Shown here: positions 2,346 through 27,488 of the stretch, in pieces | Layout of the letters: the number at the start of each line of letters is the position of its first letter | Position numbering within the stretch: position 1 is the first letter of the stretch | From: Zygnema circumcarinatum SAG 698-1b | Taxonomy: Eukaryota; Plantae; Zygnematophyceae | Direction: 5' to 3' | NCBI GenBank assembly: GCA_037447605.1 | Contig: CM074809.1 | Span: 3,214,689 to 3,278,688, forward strand | DNA length: 64,000 nucleotides | Program-made: the position numbers and the translations under genes | The notes under the pieces: generated by a model | What the model was told of the DNA's origin: nothing | Seen by the model: only the letters and a program-made list of their open reading frames with translations | Database searches by the model: none

Positions 2346-5300
2346 ATGGCGCCTGATTGCAGGGCGGGTTCTTACGTCTTTTCGGAAATGACGAATTCAG
2401 TGCTGGACGAATCCTTCGCCGCATGCTCCATCGCAGCCGCAGATAAAGCAGCGCAGACCTTGCGCCTGCATGCGCATGCGGCTGCAGAACCAGCAGCTCT
2501 CCGAGTGGTAGAGCTTGCAGAATCAGGGACTCTGCAACACCGGGTGATGTATGTGGACCGGGACGGGAGTGCAGCCTCTCCTTACCACGACCTGCCCCTG
2601 CATGCAGGCCACGGCTTGCTGAACTTTGTCTGCCTCACACCGCAAGGGCGCTGGGCAGAGTACGAAGCAGCAGAGAACGAGCCCTTCACTCCGCTGCGCA
2701 TTCGGCAGAGGAGGGGAAGGCCGTCGCATTACTCAGAAGATTGCTTGTCGTGGAATTTCGGCTTCTTGCCGCAGACATGCGGACAGCTGGAGCCGGGGAG
2801 GGAGGGAGGGGCGGAGGAGGGAGGAGGAGGGAGGGGGCAGGGAAAGTGGAGGGGACCGGTGGAAGTGGCAGAGCTTGGAACGAGGAGGGTGAGAACAGGG
2901 GAGGTCTATCCTGTGAGACCGCTCGGAGCGCTCTGCGTTGTTGATGGGAAAGGAAATCACTCGTGGAAGATTCTCGCACTGGCCGTGCAAGAAGAGGGGA
3001 TAGAGTACTGCACCATGTTGGAAGATCTGCTGACAGGGCTCTCAGGCACATTGCACGAACTGCAAGAATGGTTAAAAAGGTGTCATGTGGATATTGAAGC
3101 AGGTATGGGTCTGAATTCTCTATTCTCTATTCGTGCTGATTCTCTTTCTGGACGAGCATGTTCCGCTTTTTGCCATGCTGGATACGGATCTACGAGATGA
3201 ACCGGCATGGTACTGCAAGGAGAAACCCAGTAGATGACTCTTTTCCGCGGCCAAGCTTTTCGAATCTTCATTTCTTCTTTCATCGACGGTTCAATCGGCA
3301 GTTTCATCATACCTCATCCTAATGGATAGTGTGGATGTCCAACAATTGTTCTGCATGCTTCCTGTTATGCCAGTCTTGGTCTTCTTCCTGCGCCGAACTG
3401 TTCATTGCAGAAGTAAAGAAGTGTTTCCTTTTCAAGTTATCTCGGCAAAGGCCTTGATGCATTACTGTATTTGTTGAGTGCCAGATAGTAACAGACGGAA
3501 GAAGGTGGAAACAGAACAAAAAGGGATACTATCAGCTAGAAATAGCGTCCTCGGTGAAGACTGTTTAAGGAAGATGATCAGTTTGGTTTGAACTCGATAA
3601 TTTCTCCCATTAGTCCTCTCTCGTTGTCTGGAAGCTAGCAATAGTCGTACTCCTTCCAAGTGTTCAGTTTGGGTGATTCTGTTGTTAGTCACTGGGACTG
3701 CTGCCACCATATGGCTTGTCGTGGCTGGTTTCAGTTCTTTGTCCTTTTTGTTGTGAAGTGCTTGGCATGCTCTCCTCTTTCCCTCTCTCCCACGTTTCTT
3801 CTTCTCTTCTCCCCCTCCCTCTTTCTCCCTTCCACAACAATCCTCCTATCCCGTTTAATCCGTTGCGTTCTTTGTTTTATTTTCGTTCTTGCTCCAGTCC
3901 CAGTCCTTCTCGGCCCTTCCAGGTCCTCTTCCCCTCCCCACACGACGCTTCACTTCTCTCTCTTCGTCTTTCTTTCGGCTTCCTCGCACTGTTCCTCTCC
4001 CCTCCCTCAGTATCGTACTTGCTTTGTCTTCATCCTTGTCCCGTTCTTTTGTTCTGTATGTAACAGAGTTACCATCATGTGCAATCAGCCAAACACTGCT
4101 TGAAAGTGCCTTCACATGTTTCGTGTCTGTATCTTGGCATGTCGCACTTTTTACTATTTTGGCATTCTTGGTTTTGAAGACCTTCACGGCGAACTAGTAT
4201 CGCTCTTTTCTTGCTTGTTGAGATCGTGAATTGAAAAAGCTAGGGAGATGTGCTTGCTGAATCCCGCAACCCTCCTTCCCCCAAAACTCTGAGGAGAAAC
4301 TCTCCAGCACTTGATCTTTCACACTTATCGGCTTGTTGTCGGACTAAGTCTGTCTGAGTATGAGCTCGTGTTTCTGGCACGATGGATACGCTTTTTCAGG
4401 CTGCTTCTTTCTGAATTAGAGTACAGTACTTCCTGTCCTTCTCCTACGATTAGCAGGAATTTTCACATGTGTACTATTCCAAAAAGAATATAGTCTTCAA
4501 CGTGTCCCTTGAGATGGTGTACTCTTGTGCATTTCCTCGTCTATTTTGGATTGTTGTTGCCATGAAAACATAGTGCAAGGGAGACTTACATACACGAAGG
4601 GGTGTCTGAAAACTGCAAGAATCTGCTAAACTGAGCTTTGGTGACTTGCAGGTGACCTCGAGAATCGGATGCGCGACCGGCAGCCCGTGGGACCTGAAAT
4701 GGCCAACCACGTGGTAGACGAGGCACATGCAATATGGCGACAGTGTGTGGACATTAGAGACCTTAGAGCAACATGGAAACGCCAAGTTGGCAGGGCTCAA
4801 AGTACAGCTGATTTTGAAAAACTGTGGGAGAATTACACTGCGGATGCAAGTCGGGTCCGCATTAGTCTGAGTGCTTCCGACAATACTTCACTCGTTCATT
4901 TGGACAGAGCGTGGGCAGATTCCGCTCACGAGGATGTGTGGGAGGCTTCTTGGAGCTCGTCATCAAACGGGAGTCTGGACTGGAAGAAAGATGAGAAAGA
5001 AGCTATGGGCAAAGAATCATCCAAATCTTCCGGATCTCGGACCTCAATGAAAATGGCTCAGATTTGGAAGTTGGTGGTGAATGCGATTAGGCCCACGCAT
5101 ACTGAGACTGCTCAGTTCCGGAATGCAACTGCGTCTCCGTCCTCCATGGAGACAACAGTTGCGAGAATGGGCAGCACAGGGAAAGTCATCACTCGCAGGA
5201 GGTCTCTACCGCCAACCGGAATGGAGGAGTCAGATTCACCCGTGCCTGAAGGTTTAAAGAGCGGCATACGCAATGCCGGCTACTCTCTGTCCAGTTCCTT

Positions 5301-6132
5301 TTCAAGCTCTAGTAAGAACTCAGGACTCGCCTCTGCAGACGCATTTCCAAGCCCTACCCACCACCGAATGTTGGGAAAGAGCAGCCTTACAGGGAGTCCA
5401 AAGTCGGGTCCTTTGGAGGCCACCTTCGACATGTCAGAGAGGGAGAAAGGGGTCAACAATGTGAGAAGAGTAGCGAGACTCCGTAGAGCATCCTCTCTCA
5501 CTGCATCATTCTTGGAGGCTTCTCTCAGACAAGTAGGGTCTAGCCCATTGCACACTTCCCGAGGTGCAGCACTTGGTCCTGAACCCTTGAGTCAGCCAAT
5601 CTTCACACTTAGCAACAGTGCAGGGGAGCTGGCTCAGCCTTCTGGACTTCGTTCCTGCGTGTCTGCACCGGCCGAAGGTTACCAAGAGCCCGTTTTGGAG
5701 ACTCGACTTCTGAGAGCCTATCGCTCTCATTCTCACAAAAGTCTTCAGACTCATAGGGCAGCCCTCCATGCCAGCATCGACTTCCGGGATATTTCTTCTA
5801 AACCTTTGCCGACATCGAATTCTCGAGACCTTCAAGCTGCCCTGTGTGAAGGAGCCTCTCAGCAGTCGAAGCCAAAACCAGGATCTGCAGATGGTCAGAA
5901 GTCTTCCAGCAGTAAGGGAGGAGCAGAATCTCACCTCACAAGTAGTCCCATGGAAGGGACTTCGGTGGCTCGACGAAGTCACAAGAGAGGAGGTGGCAAG
6001 GTCGTCACTGCGGAAAAATCCCCCCGCTCCCTGTCAGCTAAGGTTACCCTAACTAAGGGGCTCGCTGAGAGACTAAGAGAACAGTCACAAGGGAGCCCTG
6101 AAGCAGTGAGTCTGCCAACCCTACCGCTGTAA
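2346..6132 (+). CDS. Pseudo-pyrophosphatase 1: family I soluble PPase (plastid PPa6/eukaryote-type) fold lacking catalytic residues, plus ~450-aa Ser/Arg-rich tail; exons 2346-3102 and 4652-6132 (~745 aa)
   Basis: SPYHDLPL, FVCLTP, EPFTPL, WNFGFLPQT, GEVYPVRPLGAL and SWKILAL align to PPa6-type PPases. Donor AG|GTATGG at 3103 and acceptor TTGCAG| at 4651 give a phase-1 in-frame join. Exon 2 supplies the last PPase helix (DRQPVGPEMANHVVDEAHAIW). Confidence 0.85.
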
Positions 6133-7645
6133 CTGAAGACTGAGTGGGGGACACGTAGAAGTAGTTTCGAAGTATGCTTCATTCTCTAATGAAAAAGTGT
6201 ATTGGTCAGTTACCAGTTCCTTGGGCAACAGAGTGAAGGGTCCCAGGAGGAACGATGGGATAGGGACCGGGCGTTGCTTTTCTGCGGCGGTGTATCCTTA
6301 AAGAAATTATTTGTTCAAGGGCACGACTTGGTAGAAGGTTCCCGGCATCTTCCCAGGCGTTTGGAGTATATACAGCACTTAGAAAAAGTTTGGGGCTCGT
6401 ATTTTCGAACTTCTACGAAAGCAAGCAAGTTATGTCTTTGTCAACGGAAGGTGGTTTGCTGACACACGCTCCCCACAGGGAACACTCTCTTGGAGCCGGT
6501 TCCATGCCTTTGGAAGTCCTGGCTCTTTGACGAGCGGAGATAAGCACTTCACTTTTTTTAGTGACTGGCCAATGCTTGTTATGAAGTCGGCCGAGCTTCA
6601 GTCAGGAGAGAATGGACGAGTGTCTTTGGTCGTTTTTTTGGCTATATCTAGGGCTTTTCCAGTCAGGCCGTTGGCTTTTCTTGTGCCTGATAGAGCTCCT
6701 TGGAGCATGCTGCGAGGCTGCAGACGCTCGCCTATGCCCAACAATTTTCTTGCTCTTGCTATGCTTCCGAGGTTTCGTACGTTACCTCATGACTACTTAT
6801 ATTGGTGTTGTACCTACTACCGTCTATAAGGATAGCTATGCTTTGGTTCCCCCTTGTAACTAGTTCACCTTTGTCAACTAAAACCCACACACGTCTGATG
6901 TGGTGCACGGCTTGGTTTTATTGTGTTGTTACTGGCCATGACATTACATGACGTGAAAATTGGCGCAAGGTGGGAGTTGGGGGATTTAACACGCAATGGA
7001 ATGCTCAGCACACATCGGATGCATCGGGAGCAGCCGCAGCCATTGAGAAAGCTGAAGACCCATNNNNNNNNNNTCAGGATTTACTGCGCATCAGACAGCC
7101 AGGAACGCTCATATCTGAAGCGGAAGTCAACCAGGTCTGGCATGCACAGACCCTGTGAATCTTATTTTGAAAGCACAAGGTGCAGATTTGTAAAGAACAA
7201 ACAGAGGTCGACTCTTACTCACACCAAAACAGCCATGACTCAGTTCAGAACAAATAATGCTTAATGAAGTCAGGTTCCACGTATGATCTTATCTTCGAAT
7301 CCTTTAAGAAACGCAATTGCAGTCCCATAGATGCAAAGCAGGTCTACGTTACAGTTGAGAGTGCTACAGCAAACACCAAGCTGGCCTACAGTTGAGCAGG
7401 TATTTTGTAAACATGAGATGCTGGTGGGCGTAACCCAGGATGCTCTAGCCATAGTGGTTGAGCGATATTCAGCCGTACTGCCGCGACGAGGTTCTTCGTA
7501 GTAGTGTGAGTTGACTTCGAAAAAGTAGACAGATGCTAGCATATAGTGCAAGCCAAGTATGAACCAAACGACAGTCATCAATCGCCATTCACTGCATAAC
7601 CTCTGAAGTAGGGATCAAATCTTATTTACAGATCCCACACAAACA

Positions 7646-8404
7646 TCATCCCTCCTCCGCCCTTACCTGGACCTCTCCGGCGCATGGCGAGCCACCTGGA
7701 AACGAGTGCATTTGCAGAACTGAATCCATAGAGACTGTCCTCTCTGTTTTGCTCCCAGTACGTGACTCGCTCTCTTCCAGGTGCATCAGGTCCTGCTCCG
7801 GGGGTGGAGAGGAAGGGCAAGCAGGATTCCGCCGTGGCTGTTTGCTTGCTCCTCCTGCAGACTCCGCGGCGGTACCAACATACAAAAGCTCGTTCGGGCC
7901 TACACGAACATAGCCGGGAGGCAGGCTCTCGTTGCTACTGCACGGCATAGTGCCATTACTGTAGTCATACATCGCTCCAAGCGCCATCATTTGCTCAAAT
8001 CTCATAGCTGCATGCAAAGGTAGGACGCCCTGCTGAGCGCCATAGAACGCCTGCATGTGGATCTGCATCGCAGCCGCAAAGTGATCCATGTAGCTCCATC
8101 CCTCCATCACTTCCAAGTACTGCAAGCCCTAATCTTCCCGCTTCCAAACTCCGTCTGACTGCCGATTCGATTAAGCAAGCAGTCGACCCGACAATATCTC
8201 TCACCGCCTTTCTCCCCTGAAAATCACCCCCCCCACCCCCTCCTTCCCACCACGTCTTCAAAAATAATGCAAGGGACCCTTGTGCTTTTTCTTCCCTTGA
8301 AAGAAGAACCTGAGCAAACGTGCTCCTGGTGCAAGCGCTGGGCTCCAATCCTCTGACTCGGTTTCGGAATCAACGATTTGTTCAGAAATCCGCTTGAATT
8401 CCAT
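7646..8404 (-). CDS. Hypothetical protein fragment(s) in the duplicated unit (MEFKRISEQIVDSETESEDW... and the 159-codon ORF 7646-8125)
   Basis: Protein-like, non-repetitive ORF (AMYDYSNGTMPCSSNESLPPGYVRVGPNELLYVGT) and an upstream ATG exon. Splicing is unresolved and no family was recognised. Confidence 0.3.
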
Positions 8405-9929
8405 GGCGTCTGGTGCAGGGCAGTGCATTGCAGCAGCAGAACCCTAAATCATTGAAGCAGCCATGGCTGAAATGCGAAAGAAACCCCCAAGCGCCTTCCC
8501 TCCCTCTCAAAAGGGAGCGACTGTCTGAGACGGCGTGGCTTGCAGTCGAGCGGAACGGAACCTCTGCGAAGGCACCGTTCCGCGGGACGGTAAGTTTCGC
8601 TTTCCAGCCCTGTCAGTCTGGCGATCGTGCGCTCCTCGAAGGCCGAAACGGCGAATCGTGGGCGGCAAATGGCCGCCCGTTCCGCGGAACGTTTCGTGTC
8701 CCGCGGAACGGCCGTTTCACCGTCTGGGTAGATCTGGGAGGGCTCTGATTGNNNNNNNNNNAGTGACTGGCCAATGCTTGTTATGAAGTCGGCCGAGCTT
8801 CAGTCAGGAGAGAATGGACGAGTGTCTTTGGTCGTTTTTTTGGCTATATCTAGGGCTTTTCCAGTCAGGCCGTTGGCTTTTCTTGTGCCTGATAGAGCTC
8901 CTTGGAGCATGCTGCGAGGCTGCAGACGCTCGCCTATGCCCAACAATTTTCTTGCTCTTGCTATGCTTCCGAGGTTTCGTACGTTACCTCATGACTACTT
9001 ATATTGGTGTTGTACCTACTACCGTCTATAAGGATAGCTATGCTTTGGTTCCCCCTTGTAACTAGTTCACCTTTGTCAACTAAAACCCACACACGTCTGA
9101 TGTGGTGCACGGCTTGGTTTTATTGTGTTGTTACTGGCCATGACATTACATGACGTGAAAATTGGCGCAAGGTGGGAGTTGGGGGATTTAACACGCAATG
9201 GAATGCTCAGCACACATCGGATGCATCGGGAGCAGCCGCAGCCATTGAGAAAGCTGAAGACCCATATATTAAAGTGACAGGAGACTCAGTAATAAGGAAG
9301 CACCCACAATACAGCCAAGCCCTCACTCCCACTCTCTGCTGCGCTTCCCTCCCGGGACTGCAATGCCGAGCTCATCATCCGAAGATGACATGATATGCTC
9401 CACGTGGCTCCCTGAAAAGCCTCCAAATTCCACCACCCACTCGCGAAGCTGCCCCGCCAGCTCCTCTGGCGTTCCACGTGGCAGTCCCCGGCTGAAGACG
9501 GGCGTCGGCACAAAGTTTGGGGTTGGGATCATCTTTGATGTCACTCCACTCTGCCAAAACGACAGAACGCACAGAATATGTTACAAATTGGGTTATCAAG
9601 CTGTCATGCAACGTCAGGATTTACTGCGCATCAGACAGCCAGGAACGCTCATATCTGAAGCGGAAGTCAACCAGGTCTGGCATGCACAGACCCTGTGAAT
9701 CTTATTTTGAAAGCACAAGGTGCAGATTTGTAAAGAACAAACAGAGGTCGACTCTTACTCACACCAAAACAGCCATGACTCAGTTCAGAACAAATAATGC
9801 TTAATGAAGTCAGGTTCCACGTATGATCTTATCTTCGAATCCTTTAAGAAACGCAATTGCAGTCCCATAGATGCAAAGCAGGTCTACGTTACAGTTGAGA
9901 GTGCTACAGCAAACACCAAGCTGGCCTAC

Positions 9930-10566
9930 AGTTGAACAGGGTTTTTGTCAACATGAGATGCTGGTGGGCGTAACCCAGGATGCTCTAGCCAAAGTGGTTG
10001 AGCGATCTTCAGCCGTACTGCCGCTAAGTGGTTCTTCGTTGTAGTGTGAGTTGAACCTAACCACTTTGAACAAGCAACATAGAGCATATCTCCTAGCATT
10101 GCGTTGAAACTGAGCGTTCATGCCAGAATAATTAGGGAGACCACGATACTAGTTCACTCGAAATCGTAAGCATTGGAAATGCAATCTGTAAGTGCAGTTA
10201 TTTGGTGGGTGGAACCGGTGAACCATGAAACTCCTTTGTGGAAAGTCATGGGACAGAGGGCTTGTAGTACCTGCTTGCCTGAAAGGGTACGTGTAAACAA
10301 AAAGCAACGCTGGTTACTTCTGCCAGCATAAGGAAAGGAGCCTAAATCGTCGGCGCTCTGCGCTCGTCGCACACTCAAATAGAATAAGTTATATAGAGGG
10401 CGACCATAGGGTGACGAAGTCACAGGCGACCGAAGGGCCGTCAGGCAAGCTACCGAAGGTAGCGCAGAGCGCAGAGCAAGAGCTCGCTCGCGCGGCGCTC
10501 ACTGCGTTCGCTTGTTTCACCGTGACCGAAGGGAACAAGCAACCGTAGGGTAAAACCGAGCGAGCT
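9930..10566 (+). mobile_element. Organellar-type group IIA intron fragment (3' part of domain I, DII, J2/3, DIII, start of DIV); NUMT/NUPT or assembly chimera
   Basis: DII stem CCATGA(10223-28)/TCATGG(10246-51) is followed by GACAGAGGGCTTGTAGTAC, resembling the IIA J2/3-DIII motif. DIII helices: GTACC/GGTAC, GCTGG/CCAGC and closing GGCT/AGCC (~10342). Long-range pairs: GATGCTCTA/TAGAGCAT and CAAAGTGGTT/AACCACTTTG. Downstream small hairpins (GCTACCGAAGGTAGC) are typical of organellar DNA. Confidence 0.55.
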
Positions 10567-11409
10567 NNNNNNNNNNTTTCTTCCCTTGAAAGAAGAACCT
10601 GAGCAAACGTGCTCCTGGTGCAAGCGCTGGGCTCCAATCCTCTGACTCGGTTTCGGAATCAACGATTTGTTCAGAAATCCGCTTGAATTCCATGGCGTCT
10701 GGTGCAGGGCAGTGCATTGCAGCAGCAGAACCCTAAATCATTGAAGCAGCCATGGCTGAAATGCGAAAGAAACCCCCAAGCGCCTTCCCTCCCTCTCAAA
10801 AGGGAGCGACTGTCTGAGACGGCGTGGCTTGCAGTCGAGCGGAACGGAACCTCTGCGAAGGCACCGTTCCGCGGGACGGTAAGTTTCGCTTTCCAGCCCT
10901 GTCAGTCTGGCGATCGTGCGCTCCTCGAAGGCCGAAACGGCGAATCGTGGGCGGCAAATGGCCGCCCGTTCCGCGGAACGTTTCGTGTCCCGCGGAACGG
11001 CCGTTTCACCGTCTGGGTAGATCTGGGAGGGCTCTGATTGGTCCAAACTTGTAAACTTAACGACGCGGCGCCGTCCATACAAAACGACGATTCAAAAGAG
11101 AATTAGTACTAAAAAAAGGGGTTTCCAGCACAATTTCGAGTTTAAAGATACGCCTTCTTAGTTTTAAGGTGTCCCGGACCCTTCCGGTGCATTGCATCGG
11201 GACGACAGGTACACCGAAAGGGCTCGTCCTGCCGCATGGCGACAAAAGCTGCGTACACGTGGTAGGTAGTGATTGGTGCTGGGTATATGATGGGTTTCGT
11301 ATTGTTCTCNNNNNNNNNNNNNNNNNNNNNNNNNNNNNNNNNNNNNNNNNNNNNNNNNNNNNNNNNNNNNNNNNNNNNNNNNNNNNNNNNNNNNNNNNNN
11401 NNNNNNNNN

Positions 11410-11930
11410 AGGAGGAGGAGGAGAAGGTGAAGGAGGAGGAGGAGGAGGAGGAGGGAGGAGGAGGGAGGAGGAGGAGGAGGAGGAGGAGGAGGAGGGAGGG
11501 AGGAGGAGGAGAAGGTGAGGGAGGAGGAGGAGGAGGAGGAGGAGGAGAAGGAGGAGGAGAAGGTGAGGGAGGAGGAGGGAGGAGGAGGAGGGAGGGAGGG
11601 AGGAGGAGGAGGAGGAGGAGGAGGAGGAGGAAAGAGGAGAGGAGGAGGAGGAGGAGGAGGAGAGGGAGAATGAGGAGGAGGAGAGGGAGGGAGGGAGGAG
11701 GGAGGAGGGAGGAGGAGAGAAGGAGGGAGGAGAAGGAGTGAGGAGGGAGGAGGAGGAGGAGAGGGAGAACGGAGGAGGGAGGAGGAGAGGAGGAGGAGGA
11801 GGAGGAGGAGGAGAAGGAGAGAGAGATGAGGAGGAGGAGGGAGGACGATGAGGGAGGGAGGGAGGGAGGAGGAGAAGGAGAGGAGGAGGAGGAGAGGAGG
11901 AGGAGGAGAGGGAGGAAGGAGGGAGGGAGG
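11410..11930 (+). repeat. Large imperfect (GGA)n microsatellite next to a 100-N gap
   Basis: About 520 bp of ggaggagga/gggagg repeats. Confidence 0.95.
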
Positions 11931-12131
11931 ACGGGGCAAGGGGCAAGGGAGGCGGGCCTGGGTCAGGATCAGTCCAAAAGCGAGACAGGGGGATCACGTC
12001 GCAGCCAAAGTGATGATGTCCTGGATCACATCTTTCCAATTTTACAACGAAGATGAAGATTAGCTCGGGGGATGGTGAGCAGTCAGTCCAAGTCCGTGTT
12101 TTCGGACAAGACATAACCGAACCGAAACCAT

Positions 12132-23553
<11,422 letters not shown>

Positions 23554-24782
23554 AGCTTCACAATATCAGGAAAATCCCGGCTGAAGCTCTCTCTTATTCT
23601 CTTTTTCTCAGTCTCTCTCTCCCTCCTCTAATCCTGCTCTCCATCTCACTCCCTCCCCTCTCCCTCTTCCCCAAACACCCCTCATCCCTCTCCCTCTCGC
23701 TCAAGCTCTCTCCGTCCCCCCTTGCTCCAACTCTCACTCGCTCCAACCGTTGCAGGAACAAGCTCTATGTGCCAGATGTGTCGTTCAGTTGCAGTTACGG
23801 GCGACGGTCGCCGTTACACGGTAGCGTGAACGAGCTGTTGAACGGTGCATGCAGGTTTGTCATTTTCCCGTCATCGAACCCCCCCCCCCCCCCCCCCCCC
23901 CCGGCGGCTGCTTGCAGAGCCATGTTGTGTTCTTATTATGAAACTTGTTGGGCCTTGTTGCCGTTGTAGGGCTCCATTAGGAGCCTTTCTCTCTTTAATT
24001 CTGTCTATTGTTGATAAAGTTTGAATGGCTCACAAGGTTCTGCATTCTATCTTTGTCCATGTACATTTGATGGCGTCGCCAAAAGTCATGAGACCAATAC
24101 CAATCAACATCCACAATGAGATTCACTGCTGCAATTCCTTCCTAAAAACCCTGAAAAGCCTTCTGTTTCTGTAGGTGTTACTTTGTCCAGAATCACACGA
24201 TGGCCCAGCCATCAGCGCCAGCTCTAGTTTCATACTTCATGACTGGGCCATCGGGGGTGTATGACTAAAATTCCTTCAATATGATCCAAATCGAAGAGTT
24301 TTATTTTGATTTGACTTACCAAGACCTATTGTATGATAAAGTCAAACCAGGCATTACTTTGTCGATTTCGTTAGATTTCATTACTTCCTATCACTACATT
24401 CAAGCAGACCGGCAAACAGGCATAAAGTTGTGCAATGTAACAAGACGACGAAGCCGACGAAGTCGTGTAAGCTCGCCCAAGTCGTTTTCTTCAATCCATT
24501 AGTTTTTACAAGATTTTGTTGAACAACCTAAAGATCAACTGGCTGACCGAGAATCACAGACAAAGGTAATGCCCTCATCTTAGCCCTGTACGTCGGCAAA
24601 CCTCCATAACCCCTACATGAATTAACTAGGTCACAAATCTACCATATGTATACGCCGCCTCGCCTCCATCCTTCACCTAAGAAGAAGAAGCTTCCACAAG
24701 AACCCCTAGCCCATTCCCTTCCACCCTTTGCCTAGGATAAACAGCGTTAACAAGAACATGCACCTCTCATACCACTCCTGCT

Positions 24783-27410
24783 TCACACTTCAACACTCTC
24801 TGCCACATCTCTCTCCAATGCCTGCATTCTCATCTGCTCCTTGATCCTTTCAGCCAAGCCCTTAGTCAAAGTAACTGTTGTTGTGGGCCCAGATTTAGAC
24901 ACATTTCTTCGTCCTGAATAAGCCAACCGAGGGGTCTCCACAGAAGCAAAAGCGCGAAGCGAATGAATGGGCTCCGTCGGATTCCTTCGCGGAGAGACTC
25001 CTCCCCCTCCCCCTCCCNNNNNNNNNNCCCCCTCCCTCCAAACTCTCTCTCTCACTCGACCTCGGACTCTCCGTAATGTCATCACTACAATCATCACGAG
25101 AGAGGCTGCTGACCGAAACTGCCGGCTCATCGAAATTCCAATCAGACCAAGATGCTCTTCTATGCGTAGAATTGGACCCTGTTGACTGCTTCTGTGAGCA
25201 TTCCCCCATTGGAGTTGGTAGAGAGGGTGCTTCCGACGGCGAATCATCGGAGCAAATAACCAAAGGTGGTAGGGCTTCACGAACTGTCCGAACTTGCAAA
25301 GGTTTCGACTTTTGAGAGTTCCAAAAAGCTGCCTCTTTTCGCTTACCATTTTCGGAAAGCAAGTGATCGTAATCAGGCAGGAGATTAGAGCCCAATTTGT
25401 TTAATCCGCTTCCCTTACTTATCGAATTGAACTGATGGAGGGGTCTCTCCGTAGGCTCTAACATGGAAATTCCCTTAGTGGTTAAGGGCCCGCTCCAAGA
25501 CTCGTGCATCCCTAAATGACACTTTATCGAGGGGGGATAGAATAGGGGTCCGCTCGTTTTAAAGTCATAATTAGCAGCTTCCAAGGGGGCTACTCCTGCA
25601 AGGGCAAATCTAGGTCGACTCTTATGACCCCACAGTCGGCCAACTCCATTCACTCCTTCCCGGGGACTCCGCGATCTCTCTCTCCACTCTCTCTCCCAAT
25701 CCTCTCCCTCCTCTCTCTCCCTCCCATTCAGCGGCTGCGATATGTTATGGAACGTCCCGGATCGCCACCACTTTCCTGAAGATTCCGCCGCTCCTTTTGA
25801 AGGGGGAGAGAGCCTCCTCCAATCCTCCAAATCTGGGCTACCATTTCCATGACTCCGTACAATCTTTGAAACAGATCTTAGAAAACGATGGACCCTTCCC
25901 GAGGACTTAGACGCATCCCCTCTCTTCTGCTGCTGCTGCTCTCTCTCCCTCTCTTCTAACGAGTGGTTTCCGCCCCACCACGACCTCAACTTGCTCTCAT
26001 GCTCTCTCTCTCCCCTCTCTCCCTTCCCAAACTCCATCTCTCCCGACCCCGCCCACGCGAGATCGAGAGTTTCGTCTGAAGCTACCGTCGAAGCTGAATC
26101 CCCCGAGGGGCTATGTTCGGGAATTCTATTGTCGAGATATTCCGCCCACAAACTCGCATAGAGAGAGGGAGTTAGAGGCCGCGAGAGAGGGAGTCTCCAG
26201 GACTCCTTCCGGGTGAAGGAGCGAACCGTGAGCTGCCACCTGGCATGCGCTTGAAGCACCACCTGAGTGGCTCCATCGGCTGCGATAGCCTGTCTGTCTG
26301 CTTCATTGAACGGTTCCGTGATTTCTGTACAGTTCAAGACAGTGAACATGTGTCAGCAGTTCCGTTGGGCTCTGTTCCGTAACAGAGCTCTATGTGCATG
26401 TGTTGGGGGGGGGGGGAAAGCACAGTGTTTTGGAGATTGTGGAGGGTTTAAATAGCGCCTGTGTGATGGGGCGGGGGGGAGGAGGAAGGGAGGAAAGAAG
26501 GGGGGAAGAGAGAGAGGGGGTGGGGGGAAAAGGGAGGAGATGGGAGCGGGATGAAAGCATGAAATGGTTTCATCGCACTACTAAACTTAAAAACTTAAAT
26601 GAACTTAAAAAGCTCATGTCGGAACAAAGCTCAGGAAAAAGAAGAAAATAATTGTTTGAGAATTTCAAACTCACCGTCCGAAAAATTCCCGTAGCACTTC
26701 CTGACCCACTTCCGAACCTCCTCCAGCCCCTGCCAGACATCACTCTCTCCCTCCTCTCCCACTCTCTCCCTCCTCTCTCTTCCCTCTCCTCCCTCTCCAC
26801 CCTCTTCCTCTCCTCCTCCCACCCTCGCCCTTTCCTCCTCTCCCTCCCATCCCTCTCTCTCCCTTTCTCCCGCAGGCACAGCTACCACCGTCCACGACAG
26901 CAGTGAGTTCCTGCTAGTCACAGCCAAGGCGCCCACTAAGCGCACAACGCTAACCTCTCCCATGGAACGCCTCTCCTCCCCTAGAAGCACCCCCGGGAGA
27001 GGCCTCCCTCCCCCGCCCTCTCCCACCCAAGTCCGCGGAAAAAAGCCGAAGTTTCCCGCCATACAGGGTTCAGGGAAATAAGAAGGTTCGCCGCCATGGC
27101 TGCCGCCCAGGGACTTCAGAGGGCGCAGGGGAGTGAAGGGCTCGTTCCCGGCAACTTCGTGCTCTGCGGTGTCGCCACGTGGCGTCAGGCAGACGAAGTG
27201 AAATAGGTTTTCTGGAGGTTCATGCAGTCCCCGGTAGTCCCGGGGCGCCGCGTGGCGCAAAGGGAGGTCGTGTAAGGGGGAAATTTCTTCAGAGGCGGCC
27301 TCGTCCAATAGGAGGACGCGGAAGGAGAGAGTCCCCTTCTTTCCAAATCCCACTTGCCGCCATCTCCGCGGGTTCGGGGAGGTGGGGGACTCAGGCAGGG
27401 GCGGCGCCAT
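24783..27410 (-). CDS. Pseudo-pyrophosphatase 2 (paralogue of 2346-6132); exons 27410-26675 and 26324-24783 (10-N gap at 25018-25027 shifts the apparent frame)
   Basis: SPLHDLPL, FHFVCLTP, EPFTPL, GNFGFFPRTW and GEVSVVRLVGAL. Phase-1 intron (G|GTGAG...TACAG|) at the same position as paralogue 1. Exon 2 reads DRQAIAADGATQVVLQAHARW and ends with VTLTKGLAERIKEQ. Confidence 0.82.
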
Positions 27411-27488
27411 GGCTGAGAGCTCGGAGAGAGAGAGGGAGAGAGCGCGGAGGGGGAAGGGGAGGGGAGAGAGGAAGGGAAGGCGAGAGGC

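Follow-up and report, generated by a model that had tools for sequence, protein, structure and literature searches.

A 64,000-nucleotide stretch of the genome of Zygnema circumcarinatum SAG 698-1b (assembly GCA_037447605.1, contig CM074809.1, forward-strand positions 3,214,689 to 3,278,688; here called the window) carries two genes, A and B, whose products begin with the fold of a eukaryote-type family I inorganic pyrophosphatase (PPase) that has lost its catalytic residues. Both genes are real, expressed and selected, and both belong to a large family of inactive PPases that carry long C-terminal tails. We lean toward the view that genes A and B encode noncatalytic family I PPase derivatives acting as scaffolds or adaptors, a role that we infer from their architecture. 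What is new is this noncatalytic, tail-bearing derivative of family I PPase; the PPase fold itself is known.

An earlier note, made by reading the window, had described two genes, each encoding a PPase fold followed by a tail, and open reading frames (ORFs), the Pfam profile PF00719, AlphaFold2 (AF2) models and Foldseek searches all agree with this description (Table 1). PF00719 matched gene A with an E value of 2.4e-11 (44.1 bits) and gene B with 2.4e-5 (24.6 bits), both above the gathering cutoff of 23.5 bits. Searches of the PDB with phmmer returned only eukaryote-type PPases (VSP1 of T. cruzi and T. brucei and the enzymes of Toxoplasma, human and yeast), with best E values of 2e-18 for gene A and 1.5e-12 for gene B. 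AF2 models built on a 50-sequence family alignment had a predicted local distance difference test (pLDDT) score of 87.8 and a predicted template modeling (pTM) score of 0.85 for gene A, and 83.8 and 0.80 for gene B. The best Foldseek match was 5cux in both cases (E value of 7e-16 and template modeling [TM] score of 0.78 for gene A; 7e-14 and 0.61 for gene B), and the PDB matches listed, the top 50 for each model, were all inorganic pyrophosphatases. According to these models, the N-terminal domain of both proteins keeps the PPase beta-barrel and helix fold.

The active site has not been kept. In the canonical mechanism, three or four Mg2+ ions are held by Asp and Glu residues, and pyrophosphate (PPi) is held by K56, R78, Y192 and K193 (yeast PPase). 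We read 13 catalytic or ligand positions (E48, K56, E58, R78, Y93, D115, D117, D120, D147, D152, K154, Y192 and K193, in yeast numbering) from a 153-sequence alignment, which reproduced every substitution listed in the earlier note. Gene A has, in this order, L, E, E, S, F, W, G, E, D, S, K, C and H, keeping 3 of 13 residues (E58, D147 and K154) and carrying the substitutions E48L, K56E, R78S, Y93F, D115W, D117G, D120E, D152S, Y192C and K193H. Gene B has L, E, E, S, F, G, R, P, S, S, T, C and Y and keeps E58 alone (1 of 13). Among the metal ligands (E48, E58, D115, D117, D120, D147 and D152), E58 and D147 thus survive in gene A and only E58 in gene B; among the phosphate binders (K56, R78, Y93, K154, Y192 and K193), gene A keeps only K154 and gene B none. 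The D-x-D-P-x-D signature is absent from both. By comparison, 57 of the 62 canonical PPases recovered in the family search described below keep all 13 residues, and the remaining 5 keep 11 or 12. Because the residues that hold Mg2+ and pyrophosphate are lost, PPi hydrolysis by the canonical mechanism is excluded in genes A and B, judged by their residues.

Transcripts show the intron of gene B directly. Its product begins MAPPL..., and exon 1, covered by RNA contigs at 26675-26834 and 26850-27419, closes with ...KWVRKCYGNFSD and the first base of a Glu codon that the intron splits. Contigs from all four runs X1-X4, from the same organism, join 26324 to 26675, skipping 350 nucleotides (nt) bounded by CT..AC on the plus strand, and RNA contig depth is zero over most of the intron. 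Exon 2 contains the only N-gap within the coding region of either gene, at 25018-25027, inside a GGGAG-type G-rich repeat (GGAGGGAGGGGG / GGGAGGGGGAGGGGG). The frame upstream of the gap and the frame that carries the conserved C terminus are offset by 1 base, as expected if the length of a gap in a poly-Gly-coding repeat is an estimate. No RNA contig bridges 25018-25027; contigs reach 24500-24996 on one side and 25045-26324 on the other. An RSLSAK match in an alternative frame downstream of the gap was judged a coincidence. Within the folded domain of gene B, a purine-rich tandem repeat encodes a low-complexity insert, a microsatellite-type expansion tolerated there.

For gene A, exon 1 encodes the N-terminal region (MAPDC..., with an acidic D-E-S-F motif) and most of the inactive fold, and closes with ...EWLKRCHVDIEA and the first base of a Gly codon that the intron splits. 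The splice sites are a GT donor at 3103 and an AG acceptor at 4650-4651, and sampled words of exon 2 are present at a fraction of 1.00 in runs X1-X5. The ortholog P0001 (790 aa, 53% identical overall to gene A) is an uninterrupted ORF on contigs of about 3 kb in seven runs (SRR8128902-8), and its cDNA reads ...CHVDVEAGDPEN... straight over the position of the gene A junction; those run accessions turned up in no paper. The junction is supported because it has GT..AG borders and a kept frame, because the P0001 cDNA is uninterrupted and because three other genes have an intron at the same position. The phase-1 intron that the earlier note saw in both genes is thus borne out in each, through RNA in gene B and through P0001 in gene A. 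In a word-index homolog search, a method of limited use here, P0001 was the sole match to the gene A tail.

Genes A and B are only 30% identical overall. In the IQ-TREE tree, gene A is sister to P0001 (support of 100), gene B sits on a long branch (end branch of 1.3-1.4) weakly paired with P0112, and both share a clade with P0012 (support of 85), in agreement with the spread of a C-terminal motif described below. The two genes are therefore old paralogs of one subfamily that split before the species of P0001 diverged. Although they sit tail to tail, 18.6 kb apart, no recent local duplication produced them. We found no close ortholog of gene B, to which P0112, P0052 and P0029 are each 26-28% identical, and tblastn revealed no further copy of either gene within the window.

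Gene A and P0001 agree at 62% of amino acid positions in the domain and at 50% in the tail; nonsynonymous divergence (dN) is 0.26 in the domain, 0.45 in the tail and 0.39 as an overall figure. Third-position identity is 0.38-0.39, and synonymous divergence (dS) is saturated, above 2.6. The dN/dS comparison that the earlier note proposed thus speaks for constraint, but only qualitatively: with dS saturated, a numerical omega is unreliable (NG86 is unusable on the domain and YN00 throughout). Because amino acids remain 62% and 50% identical while synonymous sites are saturated, both the domain and the tail of gene A are under purifying selection. With both reading frames open over about 750 codons, and with transcription and splicing, this upholds the view that these are selected pseudoenzymes rather than decaying pseudogenes.

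The earlier note had taken the two genes for a family of two, which proved far too small. A profile of six inactive domains, run with HMMER against 1.84 billion cluster representatives, gave 2,318 matches. The best 150 of them split cleanly into 62 canonical PPases and about 85 clusters (at 50% identity) that keep 1 to 6 of the 13 residues, with a median of 3, which we call the dead-PPase family. E58 is kept in 82% of its members and K154 in 79%, followed by D115 (43%), D147 (30%), K56 (20%) and Y93 (11%). The others are nearly or wholly gone: D120 is kept in 8% (Glu is commonest, 70%), K193 in 4%, R78 in 2%, Y192 in 1% (Cys, 60%), E48 in 1% (Thr, 36%; Lys, 31%), D117 in 0% (Arg commonest, 23%) and D152 in 0% (Ser, 63%). 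The fold-core motifs, retained in both genes as the earlier note had observed, are as conserved across the family as in active enzymes. Because pocket residues differ among members while these motifs are kept, the pocket is variable and the scaffold conserved. In some members, Lys occupies position 48 or Arg position 117; because such residues sit at former metal-ligand positions in many members, the residue pattern suggests that the metal site was filled rather than reused.

All 18 taxon-labeled members are from Zygnematophyceae. At least five are paralogs in Mesotaenium endlicherianum (ME000191S02480, ME000124S00201, ME000565S08349, ME000420S07042 and ME000504S08105), 12 are Closterium proteins from several strains and 1 is a Netrium digitus transcript; in their source records they are called "unnamed protein product" or "hypothetical protein." The species of P0001 has a second paralog, P0029, expressed in the same seven runs. 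In a word-index search with a 40-member full-length profile, the matches listed were all Closterium proteins, low-complexity words having saturated the candidate cap. Searches of ESM Atlas and AFDB fold clusters found nothing closer than canonical PPases, at no more than 29% identity, and so did not inform on distribution. PF00719 scores above its cutoff in 39 of 40 full-length members, in which Pfam recognized nothing else, the longest ones included; in most, the inactive domain is N-terminal and a tail of 200-1,800 aa follows. A gene model in Closterium sp. NIES-53 (P0158) combines an inactive PPase with RhoGAP (PF00620) and is either a real fusion or a merged model.

A single duplication probably gave rise to this family. 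Dead-PPase members and canonical PPases are separated by one branch with a Shimodaira-Hasegawa-like approximate likelihood ratio test (SH-aLRT) support of 100 (IQ-TREE, LG+C20, 57 rows), and the dead clade also splits off with SH-like support of 99 in FastTree (111 rows). The single exception is P0005, from an NCBI source (18.7-kb contig, not in the window), a 5,113-aa protein with 20 tandem degenerate PPase-like domains that falls outside the dead clade and groups with the canonical-type, two- to four-domain PPase proteins P0007, P0010, P0014 and P0074. The introns of genes A and B are both phase 1 and interrupt the same codon, which lies 7 residues beyond the Cys standing in for Y192 in the helix E-W-L-K-R-C-H (gene A) or K-W-V-R-K-C-Y (gene B). 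Two more genes carry it: L008, a genomic Logan contig of another species, and L016 (Closterium sp. Yama58-4, CANIUD010000732.1), where it reads cca g|gtaag ... acag|ac gac. Because the same codon is interrupted in four genes, the intron is ancestral to the dead-PPase family or older. Two additional introns interrupt the tail of L016 (residues 833/834 and 904); the conserved intron is the only one in genes A and B.

The tails of genes A and B (455 and 464 aa) are rich in Ser (14-18%) and Arg (8-9%), with disorder-promoting residues making up about 0.66-0.69. The earlier note had called them Ser/Arg/Lys-rich low-complexity sequence, but they are not purely so because conserved motifs lie inside. 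Two motifs follow the domain, E-x-x-W-x-x-Y-T (FEKLWENYT in gene A, LWAEYL in gene B) and F-D-x-A-W (LDRAWADS and LDLAWAGS), with each Trp present in 24 and the Thr in 28 of 40 aligned members. One RRxS(L/P)P site occupies the same aligned position in gene A (RRRSLP), gene B (RRLSPP) and P0001 (RRKSLP); such sites are basophilic and look like kinase or 14-3-3 sites. Near the C terminus, gene A, gene B and P0001 share VTLTKGLAER(L/I)(R/K)EQ, whose 14 residues differ between genes A and B only by two conservative changes (L/I and R/K). Variants occur as TKGLAERIKE in P0112 and SKNFSERLRE in P0012, with weaker likeness in P0012, P0045 and P0002, and other subfamilies end in LRRSLSF-type or RQVSFNSVV-type motifs.

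Table 1. Features of genes A and B and assembly gaps, in window coordinates
Feature	Positions	Strand	Evidence
Gene A, inactive PPase plus tail, 745 aa	2346-3102 and 4652-6132	+	ORF and sequence
Gene A exon 1	2346-3102	+	ORF, PF00719, AF2/Foldseek; start MAPDC common to P0001
Gene A intron, phase 1, GT..AG, 1,549 nt	3103-4651	+	Sequence; reading of orthologous cDNA P0001
Gene A exon 2, to stop codon	4652-6132	+	Translation; run k-mers
Gene A last PPase-fold helix, AHAIW (exon 2)	4723-4737	+	
Gene A two post-domain Trp motifs (exon 2; Ser-rich tail)	4813-4839 and 4900-4923	+	
Gene A RRRSLP site (exon 2)	5194-5211	+	
Gene A C-terminal motif VTLTKGLAERLREQ	6043-6084	+	Translation
Gene B, inactive PPase plus tail, about 758 aa	27410-26675 and 26324-24783	-	ORF and sequence
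Gene B exon 1, inactive PPase fold	26675-27410	-	ORF, PF00719, AF2/Foldseek, RNA contigs
Gene B Gly/Glu/Arg low-complexity insert inside PPase fold	26741-26871	-	Tandem Repeats Finder; low pLDDT in AF2 model; in mRNA contigs
Gene B intron, phase 1, GT..AG on minus strand, 350 nt	26325-26674	-	RNA contig joint
Gene B exon 2: last fold helix, tail, RRLSPP site, C-terminal motif	24783-26324	-	ORF; RNA contigs on both sides of gap
Gene B C-terminal motif VTLTKGLAERIKEQ	24834-24875	-	Translation; frame open downstream of gap
Other N-gaps, between genes A and B, touching neither	7064, 8752, 10567, 11310-11409, 20171		

These observations suggest a model in which a canonical PPase gene would have been duplicated once, its catalytic residues lost and the copies expanded into a large family. 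The inactive domain would now be a stable structural or protein-binding module that needs no metal. The long and mostly disordered tail joined to it would bear the short conserved motifs, namely the two Trp motifs, the RRxS(L/P)P sites of basophilic type and, at the C terminus, the amphipathic T-K-G-L-A-E-R-L-x-E. If these motifs are phosphoregulated, the protein may serve as a phosphoregulated scaffold or adaptor. Both proteins are probably cytosolic or nuclear because neither N terminus resembles a chloroplast transit peptide.

Several points weigh against this model or the data beneath it. About 80% of members retain E58, K154 and an acidic position 120, and 60% have Cys in place of Y192, so a residual or new binding site, or new chemistry, is possible. 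The proposed scaffold role draws on architecture. The tail motifs are short, and RRxS-type sites could be a chance product of Ser/Arg-rich sequence, although one of them is in register in genes A and B and P0001. K-mers of gene A exon 1 and its intron occur at 0.94-1.00 in X1 (labeled "RNA?") and in X9-X12 (kind not given), while X2-X5, complete for exon 2, are not among the runs listed for these k-mers; a retained intron, an independent transcript or carried-over DNA could each account for this. Continuity of gene B exon 2 over its N-gap is not proven because the C-terminal motif and the part upstream of the gap lie in different frames and the gap is unbridged. Finally, about 60 clusters, from EukProt Trinity assemblies, Logan and ENA, carry no taxon label, and the restriction to Zygnematophyceae rests on the labeled members.

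In order of likelihood, a scaffold or adaptor is followed by a partner of active PPase, a ligand sensor and a new enzyme, and pseudogene decay is essentially excluded. The leading alternative, which we consider unlikely, is a regulatory pseudosubunit whose inactive domain heterodimerizes with an active eukaryote-type PPase and tunes PPi hydrolysis. Eukaryotic PPases of family I form homodimers, and the fold is kept together with many residues of the canonical core and surface. The eukaryote-type PPase of streptophytes is, however, plastidial (Arabidopsis PPa6), and genes A and B lack a transit-peptide-like N terminus, the fold of gene B starting at about residue 15. Pseudoenzyme-enzyme pairs are common in plants, with PDX1.2 and BAM9 reported to act on active paralogs in this way, yet some 85 diverged clusters and several paralogs per genome are more than one enzyme partner needs. 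Somewhat less probable still is a ligand sensor, the reading that the earlier note had set beside a scaffold, in which the old active site would bind PPi, polyphosphate, a metal or a phospho-metabolite and signal to the tail. The frequent presence of E58, K154, Glu at position 120 and, in fewer members, D115 would suit such a site. Against it, the phosphate contacts are lost (R78, Y192 and K193 are each kept in no more than 4% of members, K56 in 20%), the metal ligands D117 and D152 are gone from all members, replacements differ between members and gene B retains E58 alone. Because pocket residues vary and phosphate-binding residues are gone, a PPi sensor in particular is disfavored.

Nor do we give much weight to a neo-enzyme, marginally the weaker of these two, with new chemistry based, for example, on the Cys replacing Y192 and the nearly invariant Cys of the V-C-x-T-P strand. 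The latter lies just before E48 and is found in 94% of members, and gene A has a C-H pair at positions 192 and 193. The strand Cys is no novelty, however, because 58% of canonical PPases carry it; His occupies position 193 in only 27% of members, and the pocket has no other invariant polar residue. A new site formed by three cysteines was rejected, as only the strand Cys and the Cys at Y192 are family-wide, the E-D-C cysteine being limited to gene A, gene B and P0001. Decay or annotation noise is very improbable. Gene B might raise that suspicion, being highly divergent (best matches of 27-31% identity), with an insert derived from a repeat and a shift of frame at the gap. Yet both frames are open, four runs show gene B transcripts with precise splicing, the 14-residue C-terminal motif persists between genes A and B despite their low overall identity, and the offset coincides exactly with an N-gap whose length is an estimate and which lies within a G-rich repeat. 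A scaffold or adaptor thus remains our preferred reading of genes A and B.

Known proteins share parts of this architecture. Eukaryote-type family I PPases (yeast IPP1, human PPA1 and plastidial PPa6) have the same fold (Foldseek TM scores of 0.78-0.82 for gene A and about 0.6 for gene B) and share SP(W/Y)HD.PL, E.F.P, WN.G..PQT, G.V..VK.LG, SWK and the last H..W helix with genes A and B. Unlike them, gene A has 10 and gene B 12 of the 13 ligands replaced, and both genes add a tail and fall in a separate clade. In the PDB, both sequence and structure come closest to the trypanosomatid acidocalcisomal/vacuolar VSP1 (5cux, 5cuu, 5cuy and 5c5v), which also joins a family I PPase core to an extra region. 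VSP1, however, is catalytically active, retains every catalytic residue and has its extra domain at the N terminus, whereas genes A and B have an inactive core and a C-terminal tail that looks disordered by composition. PDX1.2 and BAM9 are likewise reported to be products of duplication that lost catalytic residues, kept their fold and stayed under purifying selection, but they have other folds, are single- or few-copy and have no long tail. Literature searches turned up nothing on inactive or pseudo-PPases, and pyrophosphatases go unmentioned in two pseudoenzyme reviews, in keeping with the earlier note's impression that this is not a described protein family.

Elsewhere in the window, pieces of a GCN2/eIF2-alpha-kinase-like gene lie between genes A and B on the minus strand (7600-22200), with an RWD-like N terminus near 21.5-21.9 kb, kinase C-lobe motifs near 16.9-17.5 kb, introns full of (GA)n and (AGG)n repeats and five N-gaps. 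Rfam gave no match in positions 1-30000.

Feng et al. 2024 (PMC11096116) found the Gene Ontology (GO) term "pyrophosphatase activity" enriched among 1,359 Zygnematophyceae-specific orthogroups and did not describe the dead-PPase family, which that enrichment may reflect. More tentatively, the inactive fold with its Trp-motif extension could be an unrecognized signaling module that arose in zygnematophytes, with many paralogs per genome, and this could explain the enrichment. Automatic pipelines will call such genes "inorganic pyrophosphatase," inflating metabolic and GO inferences.

Family I pyrophosphatase is among the most conserved housekeeping enzymes, and Zygnematophyceae are the algal lineage sister to land plants. 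In that lineage, many rounds of duplication have multiplied a dead PPase, which was joined to long tails bearing motifs and has been kept by selection. It offers a natural example of an enzyme fold reused after its metal site was filled or erased, in a lineage-specific gene family that is testable in Zygnema, Mesotaenium, Closterium or Penium.

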